In this document: positions 4,881 through 63,657 of the stretch, piece after piece
How positions within the stretch are numbered: the stretch's first letter is position 1
How the letters are laid out: every line of letters starts with the position of its first letter
DNA from: Eukaryota sp. TZLM1-RC
Lineage: Eukaryota; Protista; Metamonada: BaSk clade
Direction: 5' to 3'
Length of the DNA: 64,000 bases
Assembly: GCA_040285825.1 (NCBI GenBank)
Contig: JAUPSS010000001.1
Location: 3,534,001-3,598,000 of the forward strand
Made by a program: the position numbers and the translations under genes
The notes under the pieces: model-generated
What the model saw: the letters and a program-made list of their open reading frames with translations, nothing else
Databases searched by the model: none
Told to the model about the DNA's origin: nothing

Positions 4881-5713
4881 TTTTTTTTTATTATTTATTT
4901 TTATTCAACAACAAATATGAAATACACAATTAAAACTCCACATCCTCAAAACCTGCCTCCCCTACATCAAAACAATTAATCGCTAAAGATTCAGAAAAAT
5001 TTCCCAAAAGAAGATAGTGAATCAGAAATTAGTGTTACCATTCCTTTTAAAAATAGAAAATACAATCCTGTTTTTGCCAGTAAACACGATTGAAAAATTC
5101 TTCCAGTTCTTTCCTTTACAACTACAACAAAATCCTCAAAGAAAGCCATAGCAGCCTTACCTAGAGATCCAAGCAAAGAAAAAACAAATGGACATAAATT
5201 ATATTGGGCATGAGAATTTTCATTAACCGAGGAAATGGGTTTCGCATATTTAGCAATTTTATATTTTTCGCCTGCAAGAAGAGGATTATTTACATCCGAG
5301 TTAATGAAATGTTCGTTAGAGGAATTACAAGGGTCAATAGACATGGCGTCCAAAATAGTAAAACTACCATTTAAACCAGAAACAACTAGATCACCTCTAG
5401 TCAGACCCATAGAAGCTCTGTTGTAACGCGTACTATCAATATTGGGATCATCAAGAATTAATTTTGATAACAGCGGTTCTAAAAAGGAATCTACACGATA
5501 TGATTTGCACATTACATAAATTTGGTCCCTGACGTTATTATGCACTTTGCTTCTAAACGTAATAAAATGTTTACAGTTCAAAAGATGAGTAAACAAAAGA
5601 GGTTTACCACATTTACAAGTTAAATGATTGGGCAAATTGTTTGGCCACAGAAAACAACGAAAACGCATGTTTAGAAGCCATTCATTGTCTTTTAACAAAA
5701 GTCCATAAACAGA
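4881..5713 (-). mobile_element. Family D, 5'-truncated (knuckle + RLE); its poly(A) abuts the 5' end of family E
   Basis: ORF 4991-5698; matches the D copy at 49939-50949; tail at 4881-4905. Confidence 0.92.
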
Positions 5714-8712: not shown

Positions 8713-8812
8713 TTTTTTTATTTTTTTTTATTTTTCTCCCTCCCTTAGTCAACCCTCTCATATTTCACTTTCTGTCACGGCGTCAAAGTCGTACTGTGTC
8801 TTTGCCAAAACG

Positions 8813-11800: not shown

Positions 11801-13495
11801 GAAAATTCATAAATAAAATTTTTGCCACCACCCAAGAATGCTGATTGACACAAAATTGAAGATTTAGTAAAACCAATACCACCCAAATTTGCTGAAGAAA
11901 ATAAATGGCTTTTCAACATTCCTGGTTCTACATCCAATAAATCAGCAAAAAATTCTGTTCTCAATGAATTAAAAGAACGACAAAAATCTAATGCTATGGA
12001 AGGAGCACAAGATCTCAAAATGTGGGTTATTCTCCCAGTGTAGCAAATTTTAAGCAATATAATATAGTTTGACAAGGATCTTAGTTTTATTGCTGAATGT
12101 GACATTGAGAAACACATCAAATTTTTTATTTTAAAAATTTGTTATTCTGGAAAAATTCACTCATATTTTAAGGTCAACTCCCCTTCGGTATCTCTCAATT
12201 TTTGCAGATCTTTTTAACAAACTTCGAGTCAAATTTTTTTCTTCTTTATTAGAAGTAAATGAATCTTTAATTCGAAGTCATGTATTTTGTTCAGCAGATT
12301 TGGGTGGAATTGGATTCACCAAATCTTCGATTCTGTGTAAAGCAGCATTTTTGGGAGGTGGTAAAATTTTGTTTTTGAATTTTTCCAAAGGTTCCCTTTT
12401 GATGTTCATCTGATCAATGGTGAATCAAATTTTTACTTGAATCAACTGCAATTTGAATTAGAAAATTTGCCTAGTGATATCTGGATTCAGTGTTTTCCTC
12501 AAAATGTTCAAGAAATTCCCACTCGATCACTTCCAAATTTACGTTTTTGCTTGAAAAAGCTTCAGCACCATCTGGTTAAATTATATGAAGGCTTGGATTA
12601 TGAAGTAAGACTTGGCTTGGCCAAAACTAAAAATCCCGCTTTCGGTAATTTTTTAAAGGATATTCGTCATAGTTCAGCTGCTGCTTTAGTAACTCAAGTT
12701 CCCTCTGTTTATGGACTTTTGTTAAAAGACAATGAATGGCTTCTAAACATGCGTTTTCGTTGTTTTCTGTGGCCAAACAATTTGCCCAATCATTTAACTT
12801 GTAAATGTGGTAAACCTCTTTTGTTTACTCATCTTTTGAACTGTAAACATTTCATTACGTTTAGAAGTAAAGTGCATAATAACGTCAGGGACCAAATTTA
12901 TGTAATGTGCAAATCATATCGTGTAGATTCCTTTTTAGAACCGCTGTTATCAATATTAATTCTTGATGATCCCAATATTGATAGTACGCGTTACAACAGA
13001 GCTTCTATGGGTCTGACTAGAGGTGATCTAGTTGTTCCTGGTTTAAATGGTAGTTTTACTATTTTGGACGCCATGTCTATTGACCCTTGTAATTCCTCTA
13101 ACGAACATTTCATTAACTCGGATGTAAATAATCCTCTTCTTGCAGGCGAAAAATATAAAATTGCTAAATATGCGAAACCCATTTCCTCGGTTAATGAAAA
13201 TTCTCATGCCCAATATAATTTATGTCCATTTGTTTTTTCTTTGCTTGGATCTCTAGGTAAGGCTGCTATGGCTTTCCTGGAGGATTTTGTTGTAGTTGTA
13301 AAGGAAAGAACTGGAAGAATTTTCAATCGTGTTTACTGGCAAAACAGGATTGTATTTTTCTATTTTTAAGGGAATGGTAACACTAATTTCTGATTCACTA
13401 TCTTCTTTTGGGAAATTTTCTGAATCTTTAGCGATTAATTGTTTTGATGTAGGGGAGGCAGGTTTTGAGGATGTGGAGTTTTTATTGTGTATTTC
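8813..13495 (+). pseudogene. Family D polyprotein (Zn knuckle-RT-RLE), disrupted by an insertion and homopolymer frameshifts
   Basis: ORF pieces 8813-9304, 9572-9769, 9753-10034, 10063-10296, 10214-10705, 12437-13369, 13329-13523. Confidence 0.88.
10695..12065 (-). mobile_element. Family A (A' subtype: IEKRR/EPML/QDIC), 5'-truncated
   Basis: TSD AGTTTGACA 10686-10694/12066-12074; AT-only filler at the 5' junction. Confidence 0.92.
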
Positions 13496-14209
13496 ATATT
13501 TGTTGTTGAATAAAAAGTTTTAGAAAAAAAAAATTAAAAAAAAAATCCCTAACTTACAATTTTTGTAGACAATTTAACAAAATACGTACCCAATTTTTGG
13601 CTTATTTAATGTCTGTTGATCCATCAATTTTGAAAAATCATATTGTTTCTGATGTTCAACTTGGCGGTGTTGGATTCAATTCATCAAAATATTTGACCAA
13701 AGCTGCATTTATTGGTGGTGGAAAAATTTTGTATTTGAATTCTCTAGAAGATATCCTTTTGCCGAAAATCTTCTTGAAAATACAAATAGCATATTCCTGG
13801 ATAACTTAAGAGAAGAAATATCCAGTTTATCTCCCGACTTATGGCAATCATGTTTCCCCATATCCATTCAAGAAATTCCAGACAGAAGTTTATATTCATT
13901 AAAATTTGCGTTGAAAAAGCTCCAACGACATCTCTTGAAAAATTTTGAAAACAAGGATTTTATTGTTCGACTTAGCACGGCTAAGAAAGAAAAATCCTGC
14001 TTTTGCCAATTTTTTTGATTGATTTGAAGGACAGTTCATCTGCAGTTTTGATAAATCAAATTCCCCAGATTTATGGTCTATTTTTGAATGACGACCAATG
14101 GACCACTGCTATGAGAATGCGTTGTTATTTATGGCCTTGTAATTTGCCCAATGATTTGTTTTGTAAATGTGGAGCTGGTTTGACATTATCACATTTATTT
14201 AATTGTAAT

Positions 14210-31509: not shown

Positions 31510-32599
31510 TTTTTTTTTAATTTTAATTTATTTTCAAAACCACAGTCTAAAAGTCAATTTCTTCAAAACAAGCTTCCACACCATCAAACCTTACAGCAGC
31601 AATGTTTTCATAATGTGCACTGACAGACATTAAAGCTTTCGAAATCATTTTAGGAATTGATTTGAAAATAGTAAAAACAATACGATTTAGCCACAAGCGA
31701 CGATCAAAACGCTTATTCATTCTTTTTTTCACAAGATTTTCAAAATCATCAATAAAATTCAAAGCAGTTTTTCCAAGACGACCATACAACGATATAGCAA
31801 ATGGGCAAATTTGGTAATCTACATGGCGAACATGTTTCAATTCTTTTAAAGGATTTGCATACTTTTTCCGTTTGTACAATTCGGAGTCATCAAGGGGGAT
31901 ACTTCGGATTGAGCATTTTTCAAGGCATTTTTCTTGCAAACATCCACTGTTACGACATCAACAACATTCATGACATCATCAAACGAGGGCACAACAACAT
32001 CAGCACGTCGTTTTCCATATTCTGAATCTCTTACGCTTTCATTTATATCAAGAGACCTCAACAAAGGTTCTACAAAAGATTCAATATGATAGGAATTACA
32101 CATTGCATGGATTTGATCTCTGACTGCATCATGCAACGTAGAACGATAGGAAATATATCTATTACAATTAAATAAATGTGATAATGTCAAACCAGCTCCA
32201 CATTTACAAAACAAATCATTGGGCAAATTACAAGGCCATAAATAACAACGCATTTTCATAGCAGTGGTCCATTGGTCGTCATTCAAAAATAGACCATAAA
32301 TCTGGGGAATTTGATTTATCAAAACTGCAGATGAACTGTCCTTCAAATCAATCAAAAAATTGGCAAAAGCAGGATTTTCTTTCTTAGCCGTGCTAAGTCG
32401 AACAATAAAATCCTTGTTTTCAAAATTTTTCAAAAGATGTCGTTGGAGCTTTTTCAACGCAAATTTTAATGAATATAAACTTCTGTCTGGAATTTCTTGA
32501 ATGGATATGGGGAAACATGATTGCCATAAGTCGGGAGATAAACTGGATATTTCTTCTCTTAAGTTATCCAGGAATATGCTATTTGTATATTCAAAAAGA
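31510..32599 (-). mobile_element. Family B, 5'-truncated
   Basis: TSD GCCCTCGTTTGAT 31497-31509/32600-32612. Confidence 0.9.
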
Positions 32600-32752
32600 G
32601 CCCTCGTTTGATGATGTCATGAATGTTGTTGATGTCGTAACAGTGGATGTATGCAAGAAAAATGCCTTGAAAAATGCTCAATCCGAAGTATCCCCCCTTG
32701 ATGACTCCGAATTGTACAAACGGAAAAAGTATGCAAATCCTTTAAAAGAATT

Positions 32753-33003
32753 TTTTTTTAAATTAATTTTATTTTATTGTTAAACCACAGTCTAAAAGTC
32801 AATATCTTCAAAACAAGCTTCCACACCATCAAACCTTACAGCAGCAATGTTTTCATAATGTGCACTGACAGACATTAAAGCTTTCGAAATCATTTTAGGA
32901 ATTGATTTGAAAATAGTAAAAACAATACGATTTAGCCACAAGCGACGATCAAAACGCTTATCCATTCTTTTTTTCACAAGATTTTCAAAATCATAAAAAA
33001 TCA
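32753..33003 (-). mobile_element. Family B short copy (MDKRF variant)
   Basis: TSD TTTAAAAGAATT 32741-32752/33004-33015. Confidence 0.9.
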
Positions 33004-33502
33004 TTTAAAAGAATTGAAACATGTTCGCCATGTAGATTACCAAATTTGCCCATTTGCTATATCGTTGTATGGTCGTCTTGGAAAAACTGCTTTGAATTTT
33101 ATTGATGATTTTGAAAATCTTGTGAAAAAAAGAATGAATAAGCGTTTTGATCGTCGCTTGTGGCTAAATCGTATTGTTTTTACTATTTTCAAATCAATTC
33201 CTAAAATGATTTCGAAAGCTTTAATGTCTGTCAGTACACATTATGAAAACATTGCTGCTGTAAGGTTTGATGGTGTGGAAGCTTGTTTTGAAGATATTGA
33301 CTTTTAGACTGTGGTTTTGAAAATAAATATTACTTTCCAAAAAAAAGGAAAATGCTTTCGCAGCAAAGGTAAAATGGAAGAACGAGATACAGAATTGAAA
33401 GCATTCTTAAAATCTAAATTGAAGATGTAATTAGAATCACTAGAATTAAAAAAACACATCCGACGAAAGAGCAGCAGAAGAAGCACCATCAATTGTCTTG
33501 AT

Positions 33503-34295
33503 TTTTTTAAATATAATTTTATTCTAAACCAATAAATCAACATCTAAAAAATCCATCTCTCCCAAAACAAAAACACTAGATGCAACTCTCTCATAGTGAG
33601 ATCCAAGAGAAAGCAAAGCATCAGAAACCATCTTCAACATCCCCTTAAAAATAGAAAACACAATTCTATTTTGCCAAAACAATCTGTTGAAATTTCTGCC
33701 AGTTCTTCTCTTTTCAATCATTTCAAAATCATCCAAAAACGTAAAGCAGTTGGTGCAAGTGAACCAAAAAGGGAAAATACAAATGGATACAAATTATATT
33801 TTTGCATGCTGTAGACTGGCCAATTTGGACAAAGGTTCATTGTATTTTTGAATTTAAAATTTTCAGCATTTGAAAGGGATTATGAATTTCAGAATTAACA
33901 AGCCTTTCATTTGAGGCATTACAAGGATCAACAGACATTACATCCAATAAAATGAAGCTTCCATCTAATCCAGGTAATATGACATCACCTCTATTATTCT
34001 TATGAAAATCATTTTCAGCATCAAACAGATTTGACAACATAGGTTCCAAGAAGGATTCAATTCTATGAGATTTACACATACAATATAACTGGTCTCTTAC
34101 AGCATCATGAACCTTGCTTCTAAAAGTAATAAAATGTTTACAATTTAACAAATGAGTAGTTGTAATTTCTCGAGAACATTTACAAATTAAATTATGAGGT
34201 AAATTATCAGGCCAGATAAAGGAACGAAATCTCATATTCAGAGTCCAAGCAGAATCGGATAAGAGAGTACCATAAACTTGTGGAATTGTTGTTAC
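33503..34295 (-). mobile_element. Family A' 3' part, cut at 34295 by a B-variant tail
   Basis: IEKRR and EPML markers; poly(T) on + at 33502-33508. Confidence 0.88.
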
Positions 34296-35387
34296 TTTTT
34301 TTTTGAAAAATTTTAATTTATTATTAAACTACAGTCTAAAAGTCAATATCTTCAAAACAAGCTTCCACACTATCAAACCTCACAACAGCAATTTCTTCGT
34401 AATGTGCACTGACAGACATCAAAGCTTTCGAAATCATTTTAGGAATTGATTTGAAAATAGTAAAAACAATACGATTTAGCCACAAGCGACGATCAAAACG
34501 CTTATTCATTCTTCTTTTCACAAGATTTTCAAAATCATCAATAAAATTCATAGCAGTTTTTCCAAGACGACCATACAACGATATAGCAAATGGGCAAATT
34601 TGGTAATCTACATGGCGAACATGTTTCAATTCTTTTAAAGGATTTGCATACTTTTTCCGTTTGTACAATTCGGAGTCATCAAGGGGGATACTTCGGATTG
34701 AGCATTTTTCAAGGCATTTTTCTTGCAAACATCCACTGTTACGACATCAACAACATTCATGACATCATCAAACGAGGGCACAACAACATCAGCACGTCGT
34801 TTTCCATATTCTGAATCTCTTACGCTTTCATTTATATCAAGAGACCTCAACAAAGGTTCTACAAAAGATTCAATATGATAGGAATTACACATTGCATGGA
34901 TTTGATCTCTGACTGCATCATGCAACGTAGAACGATAGGAAATATATCTATTACAATTAAATAAATGTGATAATGTCAAACCAGCTCCACATTTACAAAA
35001 CAAATCATTGGGCAAATTACAAGGCCATAAATAACAACGCATTTTCATAGCAGTGGTCCATTGGTCGTCATTCAAAAATAGACCATAAATCTGGGGAATT
35101 TGATTTATCAAAACTGCAGATGAACTGTCCTTCAAATCAATCAAAAATTGGCAAAAGCAGGATTTTCTTTCTTAGCCGTGCTAAGTCGAACAATAAAATC
35201 CTTGTTTTCAAAATTTTTCAAAAGATGTCGTTGGAGCTTTTTCAACGCAAATTTTAATGAATATAAACTTCTGTCTGGAATTTCTTGATTGGATATGGGG
35301 AAACATGATTGCCATAAGTCGGGAGATAAACTGGATATTTCTTCTCTTAAGTTATCCAGGAATATGCTATTTGTATATTCAAAAAGA
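34296..35387 (-). mobile_element. Family B mosaic copy (EEIAVV-variant 3' end, remainder like 31510-32599)
   Basis: ORF 34336-34728 has EEIAVV/TAMNF; ORF 34635-35144 has MKMR as at 31846-32457. Confidence 0.85.
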
Positions 35388-36289
35388 GCCCTCGTTTGAT
35401 GATGTCATGAATGTTGTTGATGTCGTAACAGTGGATGTATGCAAGAAAAATGCCTTGAAAAATGCTCAATCCGAAGTATCCCCCCTTGATGACTCCGAAT
35501 TGTACAAACGGAAAAAGTATGCAAATCCTTTAAAAGAATTTTTTTTTAAATTAATTTTATTTTATTGTTAAACCACAGTCTAAAAGTCAATATCTTCAAA
35601 ACAAGCTTCCACACCATCAAACCTTACAGCAGCAATGTTTTCATAATGTGCACTGACAGACATTAAAGCTTTCGAAATCATTTTAGGAATTGATTTGAAA
35701 ATAGTAAAAACAATACGATTTAGCCACAAGCGACGATCAAAACGCTTATCCATTCTTTTTTTCACAAGATTTTCAAAATCATAAAAAATCATTTAAAAGA
35801 ATTGAAACATGTTCGCCATGTAGATTACCAAATTTGCCCATTTGCTATATCGTTGTATGGTCGTCTTGGAAAAACTGCTTTGAATTTTATTGATGATTTT
35901 GAAAATCTTGTGAAAAAAAGAATGAATAAGCGTTTTGATCGTCGCTTGTGGCTAAATCGTATTGTTTTTACTATTTTCAAATCAATTCCTAAAATGATTT
36001 CGAAAGCTTTAATGTCTGTCAGTACACATTATGAAAACATTGCTGCTGTAAGGTTTGATGGTGTGGAAGCTTGTTTTGAAGATATTGACTTTTAGACTGT
36101 GGTTTTGAAAATAAATATTACTTTCCAAAAAAAAGGAAAATGCTTTCGCAGCAAAGGTAAAATGGAAGAACGAGATACAGAATTGAAAGCATTCTTAAAA
36201 TCTAAATTGAAGATGTAATTAGAATCACTAGAATTAAAAAACACATCCGACGAAAGAGCAGCAGAAGAAGCACCATCAATTGTCTTGAT

Positions 36290-37475
36290 TTTTTTTAAAT
36301 ATAATTTTATTCTAAACCAATAAATCAACATCTAAAAAATCCATCTCTCCCAAAACAAAAACACTAGATGCAACTCTCTCATAGTGAGATCCAAGAGAAA
36401 GCAAAGCATCAGAAACCATCTTCAACATCCCCTTAAAAATAGAAAACACAATTCTATTTTGCCAAAACAATCTGTTGAAATTTCTGCCAGTTCTTCTCTT
36501 TTCAATCATTTCAAAATCATCCAAAAAACGTAAAGCAGTTGGTGCAAGTGAACCAAAAAGGGAAAATACAAATGGATACAAATTATATTTTGCATGCTGT
36601 AGACTGGCCAATTTGGACAAAGGTTCATTGTATTTTTTGAATTTAAAATTTTCAGCATTTGAAAGGGATTATGAATTTCAGAATTAACAAGCCTTTCATT
36701 TGAGGCATTACAAGGATCAACAGACATTACATCCAATAAAATGAAGCTTCCATCTAATCCAGGTAATATGACATCACCTCTATTATTCTTATGAAAATCA
36801 TTTTCAGCATCAAACAGATTTGACAACATAGGTTCCAAGAAGGATTCAATTCTATGAGATTTACACATACAATATAACTGGTCTCTTACAGCATCATGAA
36901 CCTTGCTTCTAAAAGTAATAAAATGTTTACAATTTAACAAATGAGTAGTTGTAATTTCTCGGGAACATTTACAAATTAAATTATGAGGTAAATTATCAGG
37001 CCAGATAAAGGAACGAAATCTCATATTCAGAGTCCAAGCAGAATCGGATAAGAGAGTACCATAAACTTGTGGAATTGTTGTTACTAAGGCAGAAGAAGTA
37101 CTGTCACATATATCTTGTAAAAGATTTGCAAAAGCGGGATTCTTTTTCTTGGCCAAGCCAAGTCTAACATCAAAATCCAAGCTTTCAAAAATCTTTGACA
37201 ATTTTTGTTGAAGCTTTTTACAGCAAAACTATAAATTAAATAGAGATCGGTTTGGAATTTCTTGAATTGATTGAGGAAAACTTTTGGTCCAAATTTGTGG
37301 CGGTAATTTTTCAAGTTCACAAGATAACTCATACAAATAGGGACTACAATTGGGGACTAACAGATGAGAATCATCAGGAAATCTACGAGAAAATTCATAA
37401 ATAAAATTTTTGCCACCACCCAAGAATGCTGATTGACACAAAATTGAAGATTTAGTAAAACCAATACCACCCAAA
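36290..37475 (-). mobile_element. Family A' copy (second duplicate), ending at a family C tail
   Basis: ORFs 36312-36620, 36506-37201, 37229-37474. Confidence 0.88.
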
Positions 37476-44820: not shown

Positions 44821-47800
44821 AAATTATCAGGCCAGATAAAGGAACGAAATCTCATATTCAGAGTCCAAGCAGAATCGGATAAGAGAGTACCATATACTTG
44901 TGGAATTGTTGTTACTAAGGCAGAAGAAGTACTGTCACACATATCTTGTAAAAGATTTGCAAAAGCGGGATTCTTTTTCTTGGCCAAGCCAAGTCTAACA
45001 TCAAAATCCAAGCTTTCAAAAATCTTTGACAATTTTTGTTGAAGCTTTTTACAGCAAAACTGTAAATTAAATAGAGATCGGTTTGGAATTTCTTGAATTG
45101 ATTGAGGAAAGCATTTGGTCCAAATTTGTGGCGGTAATTTTCAAGTTCACAAGATAACTCATACAAATAGGGACTACAATTGGGGACTAACAGATGAGAA
45201 TCATCAGGAAATCTACGAGAAAATTCATAAATAAAATTTTGCCACCACCCAAGAATGCTGATTGACACAAAATTGAAGATTTAGTAAATCCAATACCCCC
45301 CAAATTTGCTGAAGAAAATAAATGGCTTTTCAACATTCCTGGTTCTACATCCAATAAATCAGCAAAAAAATTCTGTTCTCAATGAATTAAAAGAACGACA
45401 AAAATCTAATGCTATGGAAGGAGCACAAGATCTCAAAATGTGGGTTATTCTCCCAGTGTAGCAAATTTTAAGCATAAAAAATTTAATATGCTTTTCTATA
45501 TCTAAAGAAGAAATTGAATCAAGTTCAATTTTCATTTTTTCCAAAATAACTTGCAATTCATTCTGAATTTGAGGCACATTTCCTAACCAACAACCAAGGA
45601 ACTTAAAAAGCATCACTACTATAATTAGTAAAAGGGACAATAGAATCGTTTATCACGAGGTCTTGAGCAGAAGAGCCAATCAGAAGGCATTTGCTGGCAT
45701 TAAGATGAAGCCCAATATTTTCATAGGAATCGGCAATTTCTTGAGCAACCAATTCTAGTAAATCAAATGAACCAATCAAGGATATATCATCCATATAAGC
45801 AACTATTTTTATGGAAGGGTATTTTTGCTTAATGATATTTAAAGTTTTGTGAATAGCTAAACAAAACAATAATGGACCTAAAGGATCACCTTGCTTCACA
45901 CCAGAAGATGATTTAAGACCAAATGAATTAAAAATTAAATCTGATTCTTTACCATAAAAATGGTAGAAAAAACTCGATAGCTCAGGAAAATCAGATTTAA
46001 TAACTTCAAAAATTGCTTCTCGCTTTACAGAATTAAAAGCATTTTTAAAGTCGAGATTAAAAATAAAATTATTTTCCTCTGCATTAAAAAAGGTATCAGA
46101 GGCAATAGCAGCAACAGAAGCACCATCAATTGTTTTGATTCCAAATTGATGAGGATTTAAAAATGTAGAAGCTTTGTCTTTGACACGATCGAAGACAATT
46201 GATGCCAGCAAACGAGAAAGAGATTCACCAACAGCAATTGGGCGTATTCCATCAGGTTTGATTCCGTTTCCAGGCTTTACTAAAGCAATCAGACGTGCTG
46301 CGAGCAATTCAAAAGGAGGATTTATTTTCAAAACAATTAATTGTTGGAAATAGTGGGCTAGATCATCAGCAATTTCGGGAGCACTGGAACACGCTATTTT
46401 TAAGAGATCAAAAGAAATTCCAGATGGGCCTGCTGCTTTCCCCTTAGGTAATTTTTGAATAGCTTTAAGAACCTCAATTGCAGTAATAGGATTTTCAATC
46501 CAAAAAGGACACACTTCAGGCTTGCTGCACTTGAAATTTTCTTGAGGATGCAACTTTTGGAGTTTTTCAAGGGTATCAGAGTTTACATCAGCCAAAGAAG
46601 AGGAAAACAAAGACTGCTTTTGCGGCACCATAACGACCACGTAAGCACAATTTTCGGCAAATTTTTGATTTTACAATTTTTCTATTTCCAAATTTTTTCT
46701 TAAAACAATTTTTGTTTTTTCTAGCAAAATATTTCCAGAAGGATGAAATATTCCACTTATTATTTTTCAATTCAGAAGTAAAATTTCTCATTTCCATTGA
46801 GAAGGGGATTGTGCTGGCGGGACTTATTTCTACTGGGATCCGGATCGGGGGTCTTACGGTATCAACGGCTTTACAATTCGTACAAAACAGAAGTTTTCGA
46901 CCATTTCGTGAATCTGCAACATCTTTTTTTGCAAAATGGACAACAAAAATTACTGTTTTCAGAAGGGGAAGAAGAGGGAACACTAGAAGCATTTAACTGT
47001 TGATCGTCAGAAACATTATTTTCAGCACCATTCACAACGGCAACAGCTGGAACAGAACATTTGAGAATTTGTTGAGCAGATTTTAATTCAAATTCTCTTT
47101 TTTGTTTCTCAGGGCACGTTCTCGAATTATGACCACTGATACCACAAATCGAACATTTTTTAGAACCTTTTAATGGCACTGGTTTCGTTTTTTTCAGTTC
47201 TTTCAATTTTGTCAATTTTTGAGTTAAAAAGTAGAAATAGACTTTTGACTTTTTGCAGTTTCAGCTGGAGAAAACAAATTTCGAGAAACGGAGTTGTTAA
47301 TAGAACGCGCAACAGAACGCAAGGAACGTAATGGTGGTTTTTCTGTGTTTTTTCTGGTACAATGATCAGTTTTTGAATGAAAATTTTTTTGAGATGAATT
47401 TCGAGCATAGCTTGTATTGTGGGGAGAGTGGGGAAGTGGAGTGGATGAGCTTGATCTGACTGGTAGAATCTTTGCTTGGGCGTTCCAATCAGTATCAGAG
47501 TCACTATCAGCCAAAGGCATCGTTTTGACAGAGAAACAGTACGACTTTGACGCTTTGACAGAAAGTGAAATATGAAAGGGTTGACTAAGGGAGGGAGAAA
47601 AAAAAATGCTTTTCTATATCTAAAGAAGAAATTGAATCAAGTTCAATTTTCATTTTTTCCAAAATAACTTGCAATTCATTCTGAATTTGAGGCACATTTC
47701 CTAACCAACAACCAAGGAACTTAAAAGCATCACTACTATAATTAGTAAAAGGGACAATAGAATCGTTTATCACGAGGTCTTGAGCAGAAGAGCCAATCAG

Positions 47801-50800
47801 AAGGCATTTGCTGGCATTAAGATGAAGCCCAATATTTTCATATGAATCGGCAATTTCTTGAGCAACCAATTCTAGTAAATCAAATGAACCAATCAAGGAT
47901 ATATCATCCATATAAGCAACTATTTTTATAGAAGGGTATTTTTGCTTAATGATATTTAAAGTTTTGTGAATAGCTAAACAAAACAATAATGGGCCTAAAG
48001 GGTCACCTTGCTTCACACCAGAAGATGATTTAAGAGCAAATGAATTAAAAATTAAATCTGATTCTTTACCATAAAAATGGTAGAAAAAAACTCGATAGCT
48101 CAGGAAAATCAGATTTAATAACTTCAAAAATTGCTTCTCGCTTTACAGAATTAAAAGCATTTTTAAAGTCGAGATTAAAAATAAAATTATTTTCCTCTGC
48201 ATTAAAAAAGGTATCAGAGGCAATAGCAGCAACAGAAGCACCATCAATTGTTTTGATTCCAAATTGATGAGGATTTAAAAAAGTAGAAGCTTTGTCTTTG
48301 ACACGATCGAAGACAATTGATGCCAGCAAACGAGAAAGAGATTCACCAACAGCAATTGGGCGTATTCCATCAGGTTTGATTTCGTTTCCAGGCTTTACTA
48401 AAGCAATCAGACGTGCTGCGAGCAATTCAAATGGAGGATTTATTTTCAAAACAATTAATTGTTGAAAATAGTGGGCTAGATCATCAGCAATTTCGGGAGC
48501 ACTGGAACACGCTATTTTTAAGAGATCAAAAGAAATTCCAGATGGGCCTGCTGCTTTCCCCTTAGGTAATTTTTGAATAGCTTTAAGAACCTCAATTGCA
48601 GTAATAGGATTTTCAATCCAAAAAGGACACACTTCAGGCTTGCTGCACTTGAAATTTTCTTGAGGATGCAACTTTTGGAGTTTTTCAAGGGTATCAGAGT
48701 TTACATCAGCCAAAGAAGAGGAAAACAAAGACTGCTTTGCGGCACCATAACGACCACGTAAGCACAATTTTCGGCAAATTTTTGATTTTACAATTTTTCT
48801 ATTTCCAAATTTTTTTCTTAAAACAATTTTTGTTTTTTCTAGCAAAATATTTCCAGAAGGATGAAATATTCCACTTATTATTCTTCAATTCAGAAGTAAA
48901 ATTTCTCATTTCCATTGAGAAGGGGATTGTGCTGGCGGGACTTATTTCTACTGGGATCCGGATCGGGGGTCTTACGGTATCAACGGCTTCACAATGCGTA
49001 CAAAACAGAAGTTTTCGACCATTTCGTGAATCTGCAACATCTTTTTGCAAAATGGACAACAAAAATTACTGTTTTCAGAAGAGGAAGAAGAGGAAACACT
49101 AGAAGCATTTAACTGTTGATCGTCAGAAACATCATTTTCAGCACCTTTCACAACGGCAACAGCTGGAACAGAACATTTGAGAATTTGTTGAGCAGATTTT
49201 AATTCAAATTCTCTTTTTTGCTTCTCAGGGCACGTTCTCGAATTATGACCACTGATACCACAAATCGAACACTTTTTAGAACCTTTTAATGGCAGTGGTT
49301 TCATATTTTCAGTTCTTTCAATTTTATCAATTTTTGAGTTAAAAGTAGAAATAGACTTTTGACTTTTTGCAGTTTCAGCTGGAGAAAACAAATTTCGAGA
49401 AACGGGGTTGTTAATAGAACGCGCAACAGAACGCAAGGAACGTAATGGTGGTTTTTCTGTGTTTTTTCTGGTACAATGATCAGTTTTTGAATGAAAATTT
49501 TTTTGAGATGAATTTCGAGCATAGCTTGTATTGTGGGGAGAGTGGGGAAGTGGAGTGGATGAGCTTGATCTGACTGGTAGAATCTTTGCTTGGGCGTTCC
49601 AATCAGTATCAGAGTCACTATCAGCCAAAGGCATCGTTTTGACAGAAAAACAGTACGACTTTGACGCCTTGACAGAAAGTGAAAAATGAAAGGGTTGACT
49701 AAGGGAGGGAGAAAAAAAAAATCTTAATCTTTAATTCGAAGTCATGTATTTTGTTCAGCAGATTTGGGTGGAATTGGATTCACCAAATCTTCGATTCTGT
49801 GTAAAGCAGCATTTTTGGGAGGTGGTAAAAATTTTGTTTTTGAATTTTTCCAAAGGTTCCCTTTTGATGTTCATCTGATCAATGGTGAATCAAATTTTTA
49901 CTTGAATCAACTGCAATTTGAATTAGAAAATTTGCCTAGTGATATCTGGATTCAGTGTTTTCCTCAAAAATGTTCAAGAAATTCCCACTCGATCACTTCC
50001 AAATTTACGTTTTTGCTTGAAAAAGCTTCAGCACCATCTGGTTAAATTATATGAAGGCTTGAATTATGAAGTAAGACTTGGCTTGGCCAAAACTAAAAAT
50101 CCCGCTTTCGGTAATTTTTTAAAGGATATTCGTGATAGTTCAGCTGCTGCTTTAGTAACTCAAGTTCCCTCTGTTTATGGACTTTTGTTAAAAGACAATG
50201 AATGGCTTCTAAACATGCGTTTTCGTTGTTTTCTGTGGCCAAACAATTTGCCCAATCATTTAACTTGTAAATGTGGTAAACCTCTTTTGTTTACTCATCT
50301 TTTGAACTGTAAACATTTCATTACGTTTAGAAGCAAAGTGCATAACAACGTCAGGGACCAAATTTATGTAATGTGCAAATCATATCGAGTAGATTCCTTT
50401 TTAGAACCGCTGTTATCAAAATTAATTCTTGATGATCCCAATATTGATAGTACGCGTTACAACAGAGCTTCTATAGGTCTGACTAGAGGTGATCTAGTTG
50501 TTCCTGGTTTAAATGGTAGTTTTACTATTTTGGACGCCATGTCTATTGACCCTTGTAATTCCTCTAACGAACATTTCATTAACTCGGATGTAAATAATCC
50601 TCTTCTTGCAGGCGAAAAATATAAAATTGCTAAATATGCGAAACCCATTTCCTCGGTTAATGAAAATTCTCATGCCCAATATAATTTATGTCCATTTGTT
50701 TTTTCTTTGCTTGGATCTCTAGGTAAGGCTGCTATGGCTTTCCTTGAGGATTTTGTTGTAGTTGTAAAGGAAAGAACTGGAAGAATTTTCAATCGTGTTT

Positions 50801-51223
50801 ACTGGAAAAACAGGATTGTATTTTCTATTTTTAAGGGAATGGTAACACTAATTTCTGATTCACTATCTTCTTTTGGGAAATTTTCTGAATCTTTAGCGAT
50901 TAATTGTTTTGATGTAGGGGAGGCAGGTTTTGAGGATGTGGAGTTTTAATTGTGTATTTCATATTTGTTGTGGAATAAAAATAAATATCTTAAAAAGAAA
51001 AACTGTAAATTAAATAGAGATCGGTTTGGAATTTCTTGAATTGATTGAGGAAAGCATTTGGTCCAAATTTGTGGCGGTAATTTTTCAAGTTCACAAGATA
51101 ACTCATACAAATAGGGACTACAATTGGGGACTAACAGATGGGAATCATCAGGAAATCTACGAGAAAATTCATAAATAAAATTTTTGCCACCACCCAAGAA
51201 TGCTGATTGACACAAAATTGAAA

Positions 51224-51450
51224 TTTTTTTTTCTCCCTCCCTTAGTCAACCCTCTCATATTTCATTTTCTGTCACGGCGTCAAAGTCGTACTGTGTCTTT
51301 GCCAAAACGATGCCAGTGACTGACAGTGACTCTGATACTGATTGGAATGCCCAAGTGAAGGTTCTACCCGTCAGATCAAGCTCATCCCCTTCATTCCTCC
51401 ACTCTCCCCACCCTCCAAGCTATGCTCGAAATTCTTCTCAAAAAAATTCA
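51224..51450 (+). promoter_or_regulatory. Shared 5' module (T-tract, 77-nt 5' UTR, first ~47 codons); putative internal promoter / structured RNA. Also at 8731-8950(+), 2650-2868(-), 47385-47605(-), 49497-49721(-)
   Basis: Near-identical nucleotide block at the 5' end of families A, B and D; function is inferred. Confidence 0.6.
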
Positions 51451-54400
51451 AATTCAAAAAATGATCAGCGTGCCGTAAAAAACACAAAACTCTCAAAAAA
51501 TGTTCCCCGTTGCTCATCCTGTCATAAAGTTGGTCATAAAAAGAATTCTAAAAAATGTGAAAATTATCAAAATCCATCTATTTCTTATTCTGTAACTGCC
51601 GCTGCTGCTGAATTAAATAATTTAGAATTCAATTTACCTCCCAAAGATGAGTGCACTGCAGAAGACAATGATGCAGTGATGTTAGATATTCCCCTTGAAG
51701 CAAGTCAAATTGATAATTGTGCTATTTGTAATGAAAAAGCTGAAAGATATATTTTAAAAAATAATTTATATGTATGCCATGTTTGCTCCTCACTTGATAC
51801 ACTACGGCCTCCATGTAAGATTCCGAATGTTCTTAGTCCCAAGGCTTCCATTCCCTTTTCTGTTGCGTTTAGAACATTCAGTCTTGCTTTGAAAAAAGGA
51901 GAATGGGATATATTTTCTATTTGGAAATTCTTCCTTGAACAAAAATCAGGTTCTCGTCCCCAAAAGGTTTTCACTCCAAAGAAACAACCCAAGAATAAGA
52001 CTGTACGAAAACTTTTGCTACGTGGGAGATATGGTTCAGGGAAAAACGCTCTGTTCTCATCTGATCTTGCTCCTGTGACTGATGAAACTGTAAATCAATT
52101 AGTGGATCTGCATCCAGCTGAATTTCTTAATTTGGATAAACCATCTGCTTCACAATTTTGGAAACAAAATCCACTTTCTGAAAAAGAAGTTGAAACTGCC
52201 ATTTTCCGTCTTCCATCTGGAAAAGCTCCAGGTCCATCTGGAATTACTTTTGATATGCTGAAATCTGTGTGCCGCCAAAATTCCTTTATTATTAAAGATT
52301 TATGTTCCTTTTTTTCAAGATGTTTTGACAATGAAAATTGTTCCACCCAAAGAATTAAGTGCATCACGGTTAGTGGCTTTAACTAAACCTAATGGAAAAG
52401 TTCGCCCAATTGCCATTGGTGAAGCCATTTATCGCCTGATGTCTTCAGTAATTTTTAATCGAGTTTCAACAAAAGCTAAAGAATACTTTTCTCCATTCCA
52501 ATATGGAATCAAAACCATAGATGGAGCTTCAGTTGCAGCTTTGACATCTGATTTGTTTTTCAATTGTCACGAAAATAGTTGCATTTTTAATCTTGATTTC
52601 AAAAATGCTTTCAATTCAGTGAAAAGAGATTCAATTTGGAAAGAAATCAAATCAAATTTTCCTGAACTCGAAACCTTTTTTTATAGGTTTTATGGTAATT
52701 CATCTGATTTAATTTTTAATTCTTTTAATCTGGGCTCTTTATCAGGAGTTAAACAAGGAGACCCTTTAGGTCCTTTCTTTTTTTGTCTTGCAATTCACCC
52801 AATTTTGAAAAAATTAAAAGAAGAAAATTCTGACCTTCAAGTGGTAGCTTACATGGATGACATTTCTTGTATTGGTCCAGAAAGTACAATTAATAGGGTT
52901 GCTAATGAAGCTGCTACATTATACCAATCCATAGGTCTTGAGTTGAATGTTCAAAAATGTTTTTGTATTTCTAGGAAAAATGTTAAGTTAATAATTAATT
53001 CCCTTGAAGTTCCATATATTGATTATACTTCAACTAGTTTCTGCTTTCTTGGTTGCTATTTAGGTTCCGCCGAAAAAACACTTGATAGCCTTGAAAATTA
53101 TTTAAATTCAATTAAAAAAGAGCTAGAAGTCATAAAGACTCTTGAATTGGAAAAACATCTTAAGTTTTTTCTTTTGAAAATTTGTTATGCTGGAAAAATT
53201 ACTCATTTACTGAGATCATTACCTCCATCCCTAACTTACAATTTTTGTAGACAATTTAACAAAATACGTACCCAATTTTTGGCTTATTTAATGTCTGTTG
53301 ATCCATCAATTTTGAAAAATCATATTTTTTCTGATGTTCAACTTGGCGGTGTTGGGTTCAATTCATCAAAATATTTGACCAAAGCTGCATTTATTGGTGG
53401 TGGAAAAAGTTTTGTATTTGAATTCTCCAGAAGATATCCTTTTGCCGAAAATCTTCTTGAAACTACAAATAGCCTATTCCTCGATAACTTAAGAGAAGAA
53501 ATTTCCAGTTTATCTCCAGACTTATGGCAATCATGTTTCCCCATATCTATTCAAGGCATTCCAGACAGAAGTTTGTATTCTCTAAAATTTGCGTTGAAAA
53601 AGCTCCAACGACATCTTTTGAAAAAATTTGAAAGCAAGGATTTTATTGTTCGACTTAGCACGGCTAAGAAAGAAAATCCTGTTTTTGCAAATTTTTTGAT
53701 TGATTTGAAGGACAGTTCATCTGCAGTTTTGATAAATCAAATTCCCCAGATTTATGGTCTATTTTTGAATGACGACCAATGGACCACTGCTATGAGAATG
53801 CGTTGTTATTTATGGCCTTGTAATTTGCCCAATGATTTGTTTTGTAAATGTGGTGCTGGTTTGACATTATCACATTTATTTAATTGTAATAGATATATTT
53901 CCTATCGTTCTACGTTGCATGATGCAGTCAGAGATCAAATCCATGCAATGTGTAATTCCTATCATATTGAATCTTTTGTAGAACCTTTGTTGAGGTCTCT
54001 TGATATAAATGAAAGCGTAAGAGATTCAGAATATGGAAAACGACGTGCTGATGTTGTTGTGCCCTCGTTTGATGATGTCATGAATGTTGTTGATGTCGTA
54101 ACAGTGGATGTATGCAAGAAAAATGCCTTGAAAAATGCTCAATCCGAAGTATCCCCCCTAGATGACTCCGAATTGTACAAACGGAAAAAGTATGCAAATA
54201 CTTTAAAAGAATTGAAACATGTTCGCCATGTAGATTACCGAATTTGCCCATTTGCTATATCGTTGTATGGTCGTCTTGGAAAAACTGCTTTGAATTTTAT
54301 TGATGATTTTGAAAATCTTGTGAAAAAAAGAATGAATAAGCGTTTTGATCGTCGCTTGTGGCTAAATCGTATTGTTTTTACTATTTTCAAATCAATTCCT

Positions 54401-54505
54401 AAAATGATGTCGAAAGCTTTAATGTCTGTCAGTGCACATTATGAAAACATTGCTGCTGTAAGGTTTGATGGTGTGGAAGCTTGTTTTGAAGATATTGACT
54501 TTTAG
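51310..54505 (+). CDS. Family B polyprotein (~1065 aa): CCHC knuckle, C4 finger, RT, Zn knuckle, RLE; one frameshift at the T-run near 52309-52315
   Basis: ORFs 51310-52386 and 52325-54505 overlap at a homopolymer; CSSCHKVGHKKNSKKC, CAIC..CHVC, YMDD, CKCGAGLTLSHLFNC, RRADVV..VDV..KRKKY. Confidence 0.92.
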
Positions 54506-55751
54506 ACTGTGGTTTTGAAAATAAATTAAAATTAAATTAAAAAAAAATTGAAGATTTAGTAAATCCAATACCCCCCAAATTTGCTGAAGAAAATAAATGG
54601 CTTTTCAACATTCCTGGTTCTACATCCAATAAATCAGCAAAAAATTCTGTTCTCAATGAATTAAAAGAACGACAAAAATCTAATGCTATGGAAGGAGCAC
54701 AAGATCTCAAAATGTGGGTTATTCTCCCAGTGTAGCAAATTTTAAGCATAAAAAATTTAATATGCTTTTCTATATCTAAAGAAGAAATTGAATCAAGTTC
54801 AATTTTCATTTTTTTCAAAATAACTTGCAATTCATTCTGAATTTGAGGCACATTTCCTAACCAACAACCAAGGAACTTAAAAGCATCACTACTATAATTA
54901 GTAAAAGGGACAATAGAATCGTTTATCACGAGCTCTTGAGCAGAAGAGCCAATCAGAAGGCATTTGCTGGCATTAAGATGAAGCCCAATATTTTCATATG
55001 AATCGGCAATTTCTTGAGCAACCAATTCTAGTAAATCAAATGAACCAATCAAGGATATATCATCCATATAAGCAACTATTTTTATAGAAGGGTATTTTTG
55101 CTTAATGATATTTAAAGTTTTGTGAATAGCTAAACAAAACAATAATGGGCCTAAAGGATCTCCCTGCTTCACTCCAGAAGATGATTTAAGACCAAATGAA
55201 TTAAAAATTAAATCTGATTCTTTCCCATAAAAATGGTAGAAAAAACTCGATAGCTCAGGAAAATCAGATTTAATAACTTCAAAAATTGCTTCTCGCTTTA
55301 CAGAATTAAAAGCATTTTTAAAGTCGAGATTAAAAATAAAATTATTTTCCTCTGCATTAAAAAAGGTATCAGAGGCAATAGCAGCAACAGAAGCACCATC
55401 AATTGTTTTGATTCCAAATTGATGAGGATTCAAAAATGTAGAAGCTTTGTCTTTGACACGATCGAAGACAATTGATGCTAGCAAACGAGAAAGAGATTCA
55501 CCAACAGCAATTGGGCGTATTCCATCAGGTTTGATTCCGTTTCCAGGCTTTACTAAAGCAATCAGACGTGCTGCGAGTAATTCAAATGGAGGATTAATTT
55601 TCAAAACAATCAATTGTTGAAAATAGTGGGCTAGATCATCAGCAATTTCGGGAGCACTGGAACACGCTATTTTTAACAGATCAAAAGAAATTCCAGATGG
55701 GCCTGCTGCTTTCCCCTTTGGCAATTTTTGAATAGCTTTAAGAACTTCAAT

Positions 55752-58504
55752 TTTTTTTAATAATTTTAATTTTATTCTAAACCTATAAATCAACATCTAA
55801 AAAATCCATCTCTCCCAAAACAAAAACACTAGATGCAACTCTCTCATAGTGAGATCCAAGAGAAAGCAAAGCATCGGAAACCATCTTCAACATCCCCTTA
55901 AAAATCCACATATTAATTTATTGAATTTGCACACTTGATTAAATTAAATCATAACTAATGGGACGACTATCATTAAACCAAGATTTCCTCTACAAAATCT
56001 TGATTTGCTTGCTGTCTAGCTAAAGCTTCTCTAATTCGATTGAAAAACCGCGGTAATCTATTAATAATGGCAAATTGAATCCGTGAACGCCATAAAAAAA
56101 TATCAAATCTTTTCATTGTTTTTTCTTTCACCAATTTTTGGAAGTCATCCAAAAAGTTTCTGCTTCAACTGATAATCTTCCATTTATCGAAAATGGAAAA
56201 GCAATAAAAACCAGCTGTGTATTTCTATCGATATTTGCATCTTCAATTTCTTTATCATATTTTCTATGTTTTTCTTTTGCTTTAAAAATCCAGAGCAGCC
56301 ACAGGATTAAGTTTTTCTTCTGTGAACCAAAGTATCGTTTGCAACATTACATGAGACAAAGTCAACAATAGCTTCAGAATTATCAATCCAATCACAGTAT
56401 ACATCACCTCTATCATCAGAACTAAAATTATTCAGAGAAAGTGTTTCTTTCAGCAGGGGCTCTTTGATACACGATATCCTTGCAGTTTGTGCCATATTGA
56501 AAACAGTGTCTCTAACAGCATCATGTAATGAAGAACGATAAGTTATCAATTTAGAGCAATTTAGAGCATGGCGCAAAGTGAGTTGAGGTGAATTCGAACA
56601 AATACATTTTTCTTTTGATAATAATTGGTTAATGGGGATGTTCAAATATAATCTCATTTTTGTTACAAATGCTTCATTAGTAGCACACAATCCAAATCTT
56701 CGTGGTACAATGGTTACAAAAAGTGAAGAATCTGACACCTTGTTTTCACAAACACCCTTTTCCAATAACAATGAGTGAAGATCTTGATTTAAAACAGCCG
56801 AGCTGCAAATATTATTATAAAGATCTTTTTCATACATTCCAGTCAATCTTTTCTGTAATGTTCGAAGAGTGTACTTCAAATTTAAAACATTTTTTTCTGG
56901 AATATTGCCATTGAATGATTGGGGAAAACATCGACCCCATTTCCTTAAAAATAGAAAACACAATTCTATTTTGCCAAAACAATCTGTTGAAATTTCTGCC
57001 AGTTCTTCTCTTTACAATCATTTCAAAATCATCCAAAAAACGTAAAGCAGTTGGTGCAAGTGAACCAAAAAGGGAAAATACAAATGGATACAAATTGTAT
57101 TTTGCATGCTGTAGACTGGCCAATTTGGACAAAGGTTCATTGTATTTTTTGAATTTAAAATTTTCAGCATTTGAAAGGGGATTATGAATTTCAGAATTAA
57201 CAAGCCTTTCATTTGAGGCATTACAAGGATCAACAGACATTACATCCAATAAAATGAAGCTTCCATCTAATCCAGGTAATATGACATCACCTCTATTATT
57301 CTTATGAAAATCATTTTCAGCATCAAACAGATTTGACAACAAAGGTTCCAAGAAGGATTCAATTCTATGAGATTTACACATACAATATAACTGGTCTCTT
57401 ACAGCATCATGAACCTTGCTTCTAAAAGTAATAAAATGTTTACAATTTAACAAATGAGTAGTTGTTATTTCTCGAGAACATTTACATATTAAATTATGAG
57501 GTAAATTATCAGGCCAGATAAAGGAACGAAATCTCATATTCAGAGTCCAAGCAGAATCGGATAAGAGAGTACCATAAACTTGTGGAATTGTTGTTACTAA
57601 GGCAGAAGAAGTACTGTCACATATATCTTGTAAAAGATTTGCAAAAGCGGGATTCTTTTTCTTGGCCAAGCCAAGTCTAACATCAAAATCCAAGCTTTCA
57701 AAAATCTTTGACAATTTTTGTTGAAGCTTTTTACAGCAAAACTGTAAATTAAATAGAGATCGGTTTGGAATTTCTTGAATTGATTGAGGAAAACTTTTGG
57801 TCCAAATTTGTGGCGGTAATTTTTCAAGTTCACAAGATAACTCATACAAATAGGGACTACAATTGGGGACTAACAGATGAGAATCATCAGGAAATCTACG
57901 AGAAAATTCATAAATAAAATTTTTGCCACCACCCAAGAATGCTGATTGACACAAAATTGAAGATTTAGTAAAACCAATACCACCCAAATTTGCTGAAGAA
58001 AATAAATGGCTTTTCAACATTCCTGGTTCTACATCCAATAAATCAGCAAAAAAATTCTGTTCTCAATGAATTAAAAGAACGACAAAAATCTAATGCTATG
58101 GAAGGAGCACAAGATCTCAAAATGTGGGTTATTCTCCCAGTGTAGCAAATTTTAAGCATGAAAAATTTAATATGCTTTTCTATATCTAAAGAAGAAATTG
58201 AATCAAGTTCAATTTTCATTTTTTCCAAAATAACTTGCAATTCATTCTGAATTTGAGGCACATTTCCTAACCAACAACCAAGGAACTTAAAAGCATCACT
58301 ACTATAATTAGTAAAAGGGACAATAGAATCGTTTATCACGAGGTCTTGAGCAGAAGAGCCAATCAGAAGGCATTTGCTGGCATTAAGATGAAGCCCAATA
58401 TTTTCATATGAATCGGCAATTTCTTGAGCAACCAATTCTAGTAAATCAAATGAACCAATCAAGGATAAATCATCCATATAAGCAACTATTTTTATAGAAG
58501 GGTA
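55752..58504 (-). mobile_element. Family A, 5'-truncated (55752-55905 + 56943-58504)
   Basis: ORFs 56830-58038 and 58043-58792 (in part); rejoined by TSD CCTTAAAAAT. Confidence 0.9.
55906..56942 (-). mobile_element. Divergent family (probably E) 3' part: Zn knuckle + RLE, no poly(A)
   Basis: CICSNSPQLTLRHALNC, HDAVRD, DRGDVY..VDF; ends QDFVEEILV* (stop 55973-55975); TSD CCTTAAAAAT 55896-55905/56943-56952. The link to 2869-4880 is inferred because the two do not overlap. Confidence 0.82.
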
Positions 58505-61737: not shown

Positions 61738-63657
61738 CCCCTTAAAAATAGAAAACTTTTTTTTTATTAATTTATTGAATTTGCACACTTGATTAAATTA
61801 AATCATAACTAATGGGACGACTATCATTAAACCAAGATTTCCTCTACAAAATCTTGATTTTGTATTGGTTTTGTGTTTTGATTTTTTTTTATTTAAATTT
61901 AATTTTATTCTAAACCTATAAATCAACATCTAAAAAATCCATCTCTCCCAAAACAAAAACACTAGATGCAACTCTCTCATAGTGAGATCCAAGAGAAAGC
62001 AAAGCATCAGAAACCATCTTCAACATCCCCTTAAAAACAGAAAACACAATTCTATTTTGCCAAAACAATCTGTTGAAATTTCTGCCAGTTCTTCTCTTTA
62101 CAATCATTTCAAAATCATCCAAAAAACGTAAAGCAGTTGGTGCAAGTGAACCAAAAAGGGAAAATACAAATGGATACAAATTGTATTTTGCATGCTGTAG
62201 ACTGGCCAATTTGGACAAAGGTTCATTGTATTTTTTGAATTTAAAATTTTCAGCATTTGAAAGGGGATTATGAATTTCAGAATTAACAAGCCTTTCATTT
62301 GAGGCATTACAAGGATCAACAGACATTACATCCAATAAAATGAAGCTTCCATCTAATCCAGGTAATATGACATCACCTCTATTATTCTTATGAAAATCAT
62401 TTTCAGCATCAAACAGATTTGACAACAAAGGTTCCAAGAAGGATTCAATTCTATGAGATTTACACATACAATATAACTGGTCTCTTACAGCATCATGAAC
62501 CTTGCTTCTAAAAGTAATAAAATGTTTACAATTTAACAAATGAGTAGTTGTTATTTCTCGAGAACATTTACATATTAAATTATGAGGTAAATTATCAGGC
62601 CAGATAAAGGAACGAAATCTCATATTCAGAGTCCAAGCAGAATCGGATAAGAGAGTACCATAAACTTGTGGAATTGTTGTTACTAAGGCAGAAGAAGTAC
62701 TGTCACACATATCTTGTAAAAGATTTGCAAAAGCGGGATTCTTTTTCTTGGCCAAGCCAAGTCTAACATCAAAATCCAAGCTTTCAAAAATCTTTGACAA
62801 TTTTTGTTGAAGCTTTTTACAGCAAAACTGTAAATTAAATAGAGATCGGTTTGGAATTTCTTGAATTGATTGAGGAAAACATTTGGTCCAAATTTGTGGC
62901 GGTAATTTTTCAAGTTCACAAGATAACTCATACAAATAGGGACTGCAATTGGGAACTAACAGATGAGAATCATCAGGAAATCTACGAGAAAATTCATAAA
63001 TAAAATTTTTGCCACCACCCAAGAATGCTGATTGACACAAAATTGAAGATTTAGTAAAACCAATACCACCCAAATTTGCTGAAGAAAATAAATGGCTTTT
63101 CAACATTCCTGGTTCTACATCCAATAAATCAGCAAAAAATTCTGTTCTCAATGAATTAAAAGAACGACAAAAATCTAATGCTATGGAAGGAGCACAAGAT
63201 CTCAAAATGTGGGTTATTCTCCCAGTGTAGCAAATTTTAAGCATGAAAAATTTAATATGCTTTTCTATATCTAAAGAAGAAATTGAATCAAGTTCAATTT
63301 TCATTTTTTCCAAAATAACTTGCAATTCATTCTGAATTTGAGGCACATTTCCTAACCAACAACCAAGGAACTTAAAAGCATCACTACTATAATTAGTAAA
63401 AGGGACAATAGAATCGTTTATCACGAGGTCTTGAGCAGAAGAGCCAATCAGAAGGCATTTGCTGGCATTAAGATGAAGCCCAATATTTTCATATGAATCG
63501 GCAATTTCTTGAGCAACCAATTCTAGTAAATCAAATGAACCAATCAAGGAAATAGAAAACACAATTCTATTTTGCCAAAACAATCTGCTGAAATTTCTCC
63601 CAGTTCTTCTCTTTACAATCATTTCAAAATAATCCAAAAAACGTAAAGCAGTTGGTG
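61738..63657 (-). mobile_element. Small family A host fragment (61738-61756 + 63550-63657)
   Basis: Collinear A 3' sequence on both sides of the E+A insert. Confidence 0.8.
61757..63549 (-). mobile_element. Chimeric insert: ~100 nt of E 3' end with poly(A), a 21-nt filler, and a 1.67-kb family A copy with its own poly(A)
   Basis: Single TSD AAATAGAAAAC 61746-61756/63550-63560; ORF 61916-63661 has no frameshift. Confidence 0.87.

Follow-up and report, generated by a model that had tools for sequence, protein, structure and literature searches.

The 5′ end of a non-LTR retrotransposon, consisting of a T-run, a 77-nt UTR and the first 46 codons of the ORF, is carried by four lineages whose reverse transcriptases (RTs) are strongly diverged, and we conclude that this module has almost certainly been exchanged between them. 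The best explanation for our observations as a whole, which we consider probable, is that a retrotransposon 5′ end was passed between co-active lineages by recombination and was then copied with each family.

A nest of RLE-type retrotransposons

The window (the whole 64-kb stretch of DNA that was analysed) comes from strain TZLM1-RC, which we take to be Skoliomonas litria. It is a gene-free nest of single-ORF non-LTR retrotransposons of the restriction-like endonuclease (RLE) type, constantly inserted into one another (Table 1). Families A, B and D are those of the initial annotation, E, F and G were added in this analysis, A2, B2 and D2 are subfamilies, and loci L001-L008, L011 and L012 are other stretches with related elements that were used for comparison. 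Two other candidate groups were abandoned: a separate "family C" (12066-13514, 4900-5713, 49726-50979) is the 3′ half of D, and a D subfamily "D3" is family F. The TZLM1-RC genome is a Nanopore assembly corrected with Illumina reads, and junctions at A-runs are blurred by Nanopore homopolymer errors (PMC11316075). Several database proteins are spliced models from a gene caller (P0090 skips a stop), and junctions were read from the DNA of the retrieved loci.

The B ORF was searched as two pieces. Its RT-endonuclease part is 92-99% identical to proteins of Eukaryota sp. TZLM1-RC and belongs to a non-LTR RT: it matches Pfam RVT_1 (E=2e-24), R2 proteins are among its PDB matches (E about 1e-6), and the QGDPL and YMDD motifs are present. 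Read by pattern, a C-terminal CCHC knuckle is followed by a PD-(D/E)xK-type endonuclease (motifs at 53843, 53918, 54044, 54092 and 54179), and a Pfam search of B gave no match to the APE endonuclease family. The general architecture is thus that of N-terminal Cys motifs, RT, CCHC and RLE motifs in a single ORF, and not the two ORFs with APE of the L1 clade. 3′ A tails, target-site duplications (TSDs) and 5′-truncated copies, as expected for the RLE type, are all found. No fixed, R2-like target site was seen for A, B, D, F or G, whose flanks differ at every complete 5′ and 3′ end and which are inserted into one another and into host genes. By their motifs, the elements may be CRE-like, resembling CRE, SLACS and Cnl1.

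The nest also holds a tandem duplication of a 2.8-kb nested block with 99% identity (31510-37085) and a fragment of a further family (55906-56923, minus strand; 30-38% amino acid identity to B), the 3′ end of which recurs at 61765-61860. The proteins of B, F and D end in acidic-hydrophobic C-terminal tips (EDIDF, EDIEL and EDVEF; 54470-54505, 8460-8489 and 50920-50949, respectively). Elsewhere, another element has T9 and a C-rich run at its start and an unrelated ORF behind them (L001:5863-6200), three tandem 270-aa zf-CCHC (gag-like) genes adjoin a nest (L004:6401-9131), and a DJ-1/PfpI gene holds a 5′-truncated G flanked by a 12-bp TSD (L011:9715-12570).

Table 1. Positions of elements and of their 5′ modules (window coordinates unless a locus is named)
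Feature	Position	Strand	Remarks
Left 9-bp TSD of B	51214-51222		Right copy 54544-54552; B is inserted antisense within an A copy
T9 run, 5′ end of full-length B	51224-51232	+	Inside the element, between left TSD and first C
B 5′ UTR, 77 nt	51233-51309	+	Begins CTCCCTCC; 1 difference to D; candidate internal promoter
B leader, 46 codons	51310-51448	+	ATG 51310; reaches up to the A7 run that ends the B/D identity
Predicted stem, UTR/start codon region	51262-51329	+	51262-51281 pairs with 51309-51329; weak support
B and A extension, missing from D	51449-51489	+	Older, more diverged layer; ends at an A-run
B body	51490-54545	+	Zinc knuckle 51511, Cys motif 51718, one frameshift at a T-run near 52310, RT about 52382-53056 (YMDD 52850); 3′ part: CCHC 53843, RLE-type RADV..D 54044, stop 54505, A tail
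D T-rich 5′ junction	8712-8735	+	Directly after the 3′ end of a B
D module	8736-8951	+	UTR 8736-8812, ATG 8813, 46 codons
D body	8952-13545	+	Full-length D split by an antisense A insertion, 10695-12065, flanked by a 9-bp TSD (10686 and 12066)
Module, A copy 1	2608-2868	-	T-run 2864-2868, ATG 2785
Module, A copy 2	47341-47606	-	ATG 47520
A segment in common with G	47168-47340	-	To about nt 428; ends just before the A zinc knuckle
Module, A copy 3	49455-49721	-	ATG 49634
E 5′ end	4864-4880	-	Only T-run and CTCCCTCC (eight bases) shared; ORF start 4853
F 3′ part	7406-8514	+	Family without the module, common in the nest
T-run start of E	4864-4880	-	
T-run start of F	L002:9916-9925		
T-run start of RCL element	L007:9960-9987		

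One 5′ module on four RT lineages

B and D align without gaps over the 216 nt of the module and differ by 9 substitutions, close to the roughly ten positions that the initial annotation had counted; one substitution falls in nt 1-123 and eight fall in nt 124-216 (Fisher p=0.006). The three A copies (5′ C at 2863, 47597 and 49711, minus strand) are slightly more diverged: identity is 86% in the roughly 265 nt that align with B and 88-90% in the roughly 226 nt that align with D. In B/D, sliding identity drops sharply at nt 216, from about 90% to background; in A/B, the drop comes near nt 257 (close to B 51489), so that the A/B similarity does run about 40 nt beyond the end of the B/D similarity, as had been noticed by eye. 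The shared coding part amounts to 46 codons and 1 nt, one codon short of the 47-aa leader first described. In B, this disordered leader consists of an acidic SDSDTDW block and then an HSPH..AR.S..KN block.

Downstream, the RT cores differ strongly, as previously remarked. Amino acid identity is 58% for B/D, 56-58% for B/A and 60-62% for D/A (55-62% across families), with pS of 0.62-0.66. Between B and D, the leader (46 codons) has a pS of 0.06 and a pN of 0.057 vs a saturated pS of 0.64 and a pN of 0.30 in the RT, and four-fold sites differ at 0/21 in the leader vs 34/51 in the RT (p=4e-8). Synonymous divergence is therefore unequal in the two parts, the reverse of what the initial annotation had named as an argument against a swap.

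The fourth carrier, G, was found at other loci. At L003:9924, it is 92-94% identical to A over 428 nt and then continues with its own knuckle, and its RT is 78% identical to that of F and only 55-58% identical to those of A, B and D. In the L003 copy, the join carries a stop, and G might have been a one-off dead chimera, a reading that we rejected as four other G copies read through in frame: G with an A-type leader is represented by 5 proteins on four contigs, 4/5 of them in frame through the join. Altogether, the leader is found on 12 D, 7 B, 5 G and 22 A proteins, showing that the chimeras were amplified as families.

The initial annotation had asked whether the D 5′ end might be a one-off chimera, and an assembly artefact had also to be considered, since the repeat nest was assembled from long reads and contains homopolymer errors. 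We see practically no chance of either: D with the module occurs at L001, L004 and L008, with other flanks and subfamily variants, and in 12 proteins on six contigs, and a short-read contig spans 8919-9290, across the D module/body junction, in both runs of the sample. Two frame-breaking D indels, at 9017 and 9092, are missing from this short-read contig, suggesting that many frameshifts of the nest are probably homopolymer assembly errors. Short-read contigs (window 8826, 8888, 9018 and 9157) also revealed more module variants, together with a more diverged D-like family that is not in the window.

Relatives of these elements have other 5′ ends. F has a different UTR and a leader that is only 41% identical in amino acids, with DTDW and HSPH retained. 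In the S. sp. RCL element whose RT is related to that of B, the UTR measures 14 nt and such a leader is missing, and the GEM-RC1 loci gave truncated copies only. Leader matches were found in TZLM1-RC proteins only, by a word search that is weak for 50 residues. E is a very distant element, with 28% amino acid identity to B in the RT.

Module and RT trees conflict

The comparison of module and RT trees that had been proposed as a check brought out a clear conflict. In the RT tree, ((B,GEM),RCL),((A,D),(G,F)), the groups A+D and G+F are each supported at 100%, while the unrooted module tree splits A/A2/G from B/D at 100%. AU tests on the RT reject B+D (p=2e-4), A+G (p<1e-30) and the monophyly of all carriers (p=2e-7). 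Such a conflict between 5′ end and RT is the mark of L1-type 5′-end recruitment, and it means that the module crossed lineages at least two or three times. If inheritance was vertical, one of the crossing lineages (B) would have split from the others before the host species split. A PHI-like recombination test inside the module was marginal (p=0.045).

Nested breakpoints and chimeric copies

The shared segments end at nested breakpoints, at nt 216 (D), about 257 (B) and about 428 (G); each of these is located at an A-run or next to one, and the zinc knuckle is downstream in every case. By parsimony of these breakpoints, with a module tree that is unrooted, the order of transfer may have been A to B to D and A to G, as the nesting suggests.

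A further chimera was found at locus L012 (5958-9400), where nt 46-402 of F run in frame into a G that starts at nt 420, which puts the junction only a few bases from that between A and G. This single copy has two zinc knuckles, lies inside one 12-bp TSD and interrupts a host P-loop kinase-like ORF; no F remainder was found behind it at that locus. L012 thus shows that inter-family chimeras inserted as one unit. It could nevertheless have been copied from a chimeric RNA transcribed at a nested source locus and is therefore no proof of a template switch.

Exchange mainly by RT template switching is the route that we moderately favour, and template switching during target-primed reverse transcription has been described for L1 chimeras (PMC13174262). 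In the proposed mechanism, an RT near the end of copying the RNA of one family at the insertion site would jump, at an A-run or a short microhomology, to the RNA of another family and would finish on the 5′ end of the latter. Since a working protein would be left only by in-frame joins upstream of the zinc knuckle, only those joins would found families. Once homologous, modules would be homogenised in patches by further switches or by conversion, and a candidate internal promoter or start site in the UTR would make the swap viable and perhaps favoured.

The exchange could also have taken place at the DNA level, if a 5′-truncated copy inserted in sense and in frame behind the 5′ end of another family in the nest, transcription started from that 5′ end, the resulting chimeric RNA founded a family and gene conversion then patched the modules. 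The families do insert into one another constantly, the patchy identity within the module fits conversion, and the first 737 nt of B2 are found joined to a truncated G from nt 1143, with a 2-nt microhomology (L003:19629-21482, L005:9924-11513). The two copies of this B2-G join have identical flanks, making them one duplicated block, and have lost the pre-RT sequence, which is what would be expected if such downstream joins are dead ends. Against this DNA-level route, the A/G and F-G joins coincide within a few bases, which is unlikely for two independent random insertions, and L012 has no nested remainder. DNA-level recombination was also discounted for mouse L1 (PMC3600994), an argument that is weaker in dense nests. 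We therefore regard this route as rather unlikely.

Constraint as an unlikely main cause of the shared module

The initial annotation had offered unusually strong nucleotide constraint as an alternative to a swap: without any exchange, an ancestral module would have been frozen by an RNA stem over the start codon, a promoter or an overlapping peptide. If so, the module should be better conserved than the body within families, which is not what we found. In B/B2 and D/D2, nt 1-120 are 92% identical and the downstream sequence reaches 85-100%, in most cases at least 95%; in A/A2, identity is 89% in the module vs 90% in the body. Since the module varies within families as much as the body does, constraint is not the main cause of its similarity between families.

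Some features do fit a frozen module. F has a homologous leader that keeps the DTDW and HSPH blocks, nt 94-115 are almost invariant, and a predicted 27-pair stem is 97% paired across 13 copies. Yet this stem shows one compensatory pair only and is broken in G, D2 and A2, while B2 refolds; its folding z is about -1.3 to -2.1, the covariation term is 0.1, and 25/500 shuffles reach the consensus stem. The UTR/start-codon stem is thus a lead only, weak and not established. Moreover, F, the RT sister of G, has a different 5′ end while G matches A for 428 nt, the RCL relative of B does without the leader, and the breakpoints are sharp. Tree conflict and F largely refute a module frozen without exchange, which we judge very improbable, and a residual constraint on the DTDW block and on the stem is possible.

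Recurrent exchange, in contrast, is visible within the module. The B and D of the window are nearly identical in nt 1-123, where each has 9-10 differences to its own subfamily (B2 or D2), and protein P0153 combines a D body with a wholly B-type leader. This patchiness and P0153 indicate that exchange recurs in layers. The recent swap between lineages that had been suggested at the outset is thus more extensive than described: it reaches four lineages, has left nested breakpoints and repeated patches, and includes a chimera within one TSD.

A T-run marks complete 5′ ends

In the window, a run of at least 5 T stands before each complete 5′ end and before no other match start. A T-run and then a C open the complete 5′ ends of all families observed, E, F and the S. 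sp. RCL element among them, regardless of flank and orientation. The TSD does not include the T-run in B, in F (L002) or in the RCL element; in D (L008), it takes in part of the run. A non-templated addition at any 5′ junction is disfavoured, given that truncated junctions lack the run. The T-run/C at all complete 5′ ends, missing from truncated ones, implies a defined RNA start and fits a candidate internal promoter, a role for the module that we consider reasonably likely from the sequence. The run itself may come from a 5′ oligo-U of the RNA, from an initiator or from an end-specific addition. That T-run/C is a host initiator is a weak hint at most, with few of 17 checked genes showing it.

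In GEM-RC1, one host gene (L006:4189-4200, minus strand) has a T-run, CTCA and ATG like the starts of F and of the RCL element. A bacterial promoter scan was set aside, the host being a eukaryote. The module gave no meaningful match in Rfam at the gathering and E-value thresholds, no HDV-like ribozyme was found in 10 5′ ends with a crude descriptor used without a positive control, and neither the non-element sequence of loci L001-L008 nor the stretches before 17 host genes matched the module. Within Rfam and these stretches, there was no sign of a captured host RNA or of a spliced leader.

It had also been suggested that the module lets these families home to this domain. F lacks the module and nevertheless has about ten fragments in the window, leaving a homing role unsupported, and G-bodied copies lie in dispersed host genes. 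A bolder and more doubtful idea, which we put forward tentatively, is that of a self-spreading cassette: a strong candidate start recognised by the host and an acidic SDSDTDW peptide recruiting a host factor would have swept through lineages older than the host species by means of an A-run switch hot spot. If true, lineages would compete with different enzymes while sharing one regulatory head.

Discussion

Exchange of 5′ ends is a process known from mouse LINE-1, for which 5′ UTR recruitment and inter-family recombination have been described (Sookdeo et al. 2013, PMC3600994), and what is new here is that the partner families are far more distant. As in mouse L1, co-active families exchange their 5′ termini and parts of the N-terminal coding region, chimeras found families and template switching is one proposed route (PMC3600994). 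Unlike the two-ORF, APE-type L1, the elements studied here are of the single-ORF RLE type, their partners share 55-62% RT protein identity with saturated silent sites, and the RT of B is closer to elements of two other species than to its partners. Furthermore, the co-existence of mouse L1 lineages is tied to non-homologous promoters (PMC3600994), whereas four co-existing lineages here converge on one 5′ end.

The module also recalls the Pr77 or 79-bp signature of the trypanosomatid L1Tc/ingi clade, a short 5′ hallmark of about 77 nt on different protist retroposons that is a candidate promoter; Pr77 contains an HDV-like ribozyme, is non-coding and has been explained by common origin (PMC4035085, PMC3383444). 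The module, in contrast, runs 46-117 codons into the ORF, moved laterally, starts with T-run/C and has no HDV-like match by the crude descriptor. Common descent of a non-coding signature, as for Pr77, therefore does not apply, given the tree conflict and the extension into the ORF.

With the RLE clade (R2, CRE, NeSL, the Cnl1 arrays of Cryptococcus, and GilM/GilT of Giardia), these elements share the single ORF with N-terminal Cys motifs, RT, CCHC and restriction-like endonuclease, as well as A tails, TSDs, 5′ truncation and arrays, and they differ in that no fixed target site was seen for A, B, D, F and G. A limited literature search found no published case of 5′-end swapping between distant RLE families.

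Exchange of 5′ ends is thus not limited to close LINE relatives and crosses RLE lineages that have no DNA homology in the body, providing a natural counter-case to the view, based on mammalian L1, that lineages can co-exist only if their promoters differ. Since the organism is cultured and RNA-seq is on record, the promoter claim is directly testable. The nested breakpoints, all before the zinc knuckle, map the freely exchangeable N-terminal part of an R2-like protein, and this map is useful for understanding and engineering RLE elements.
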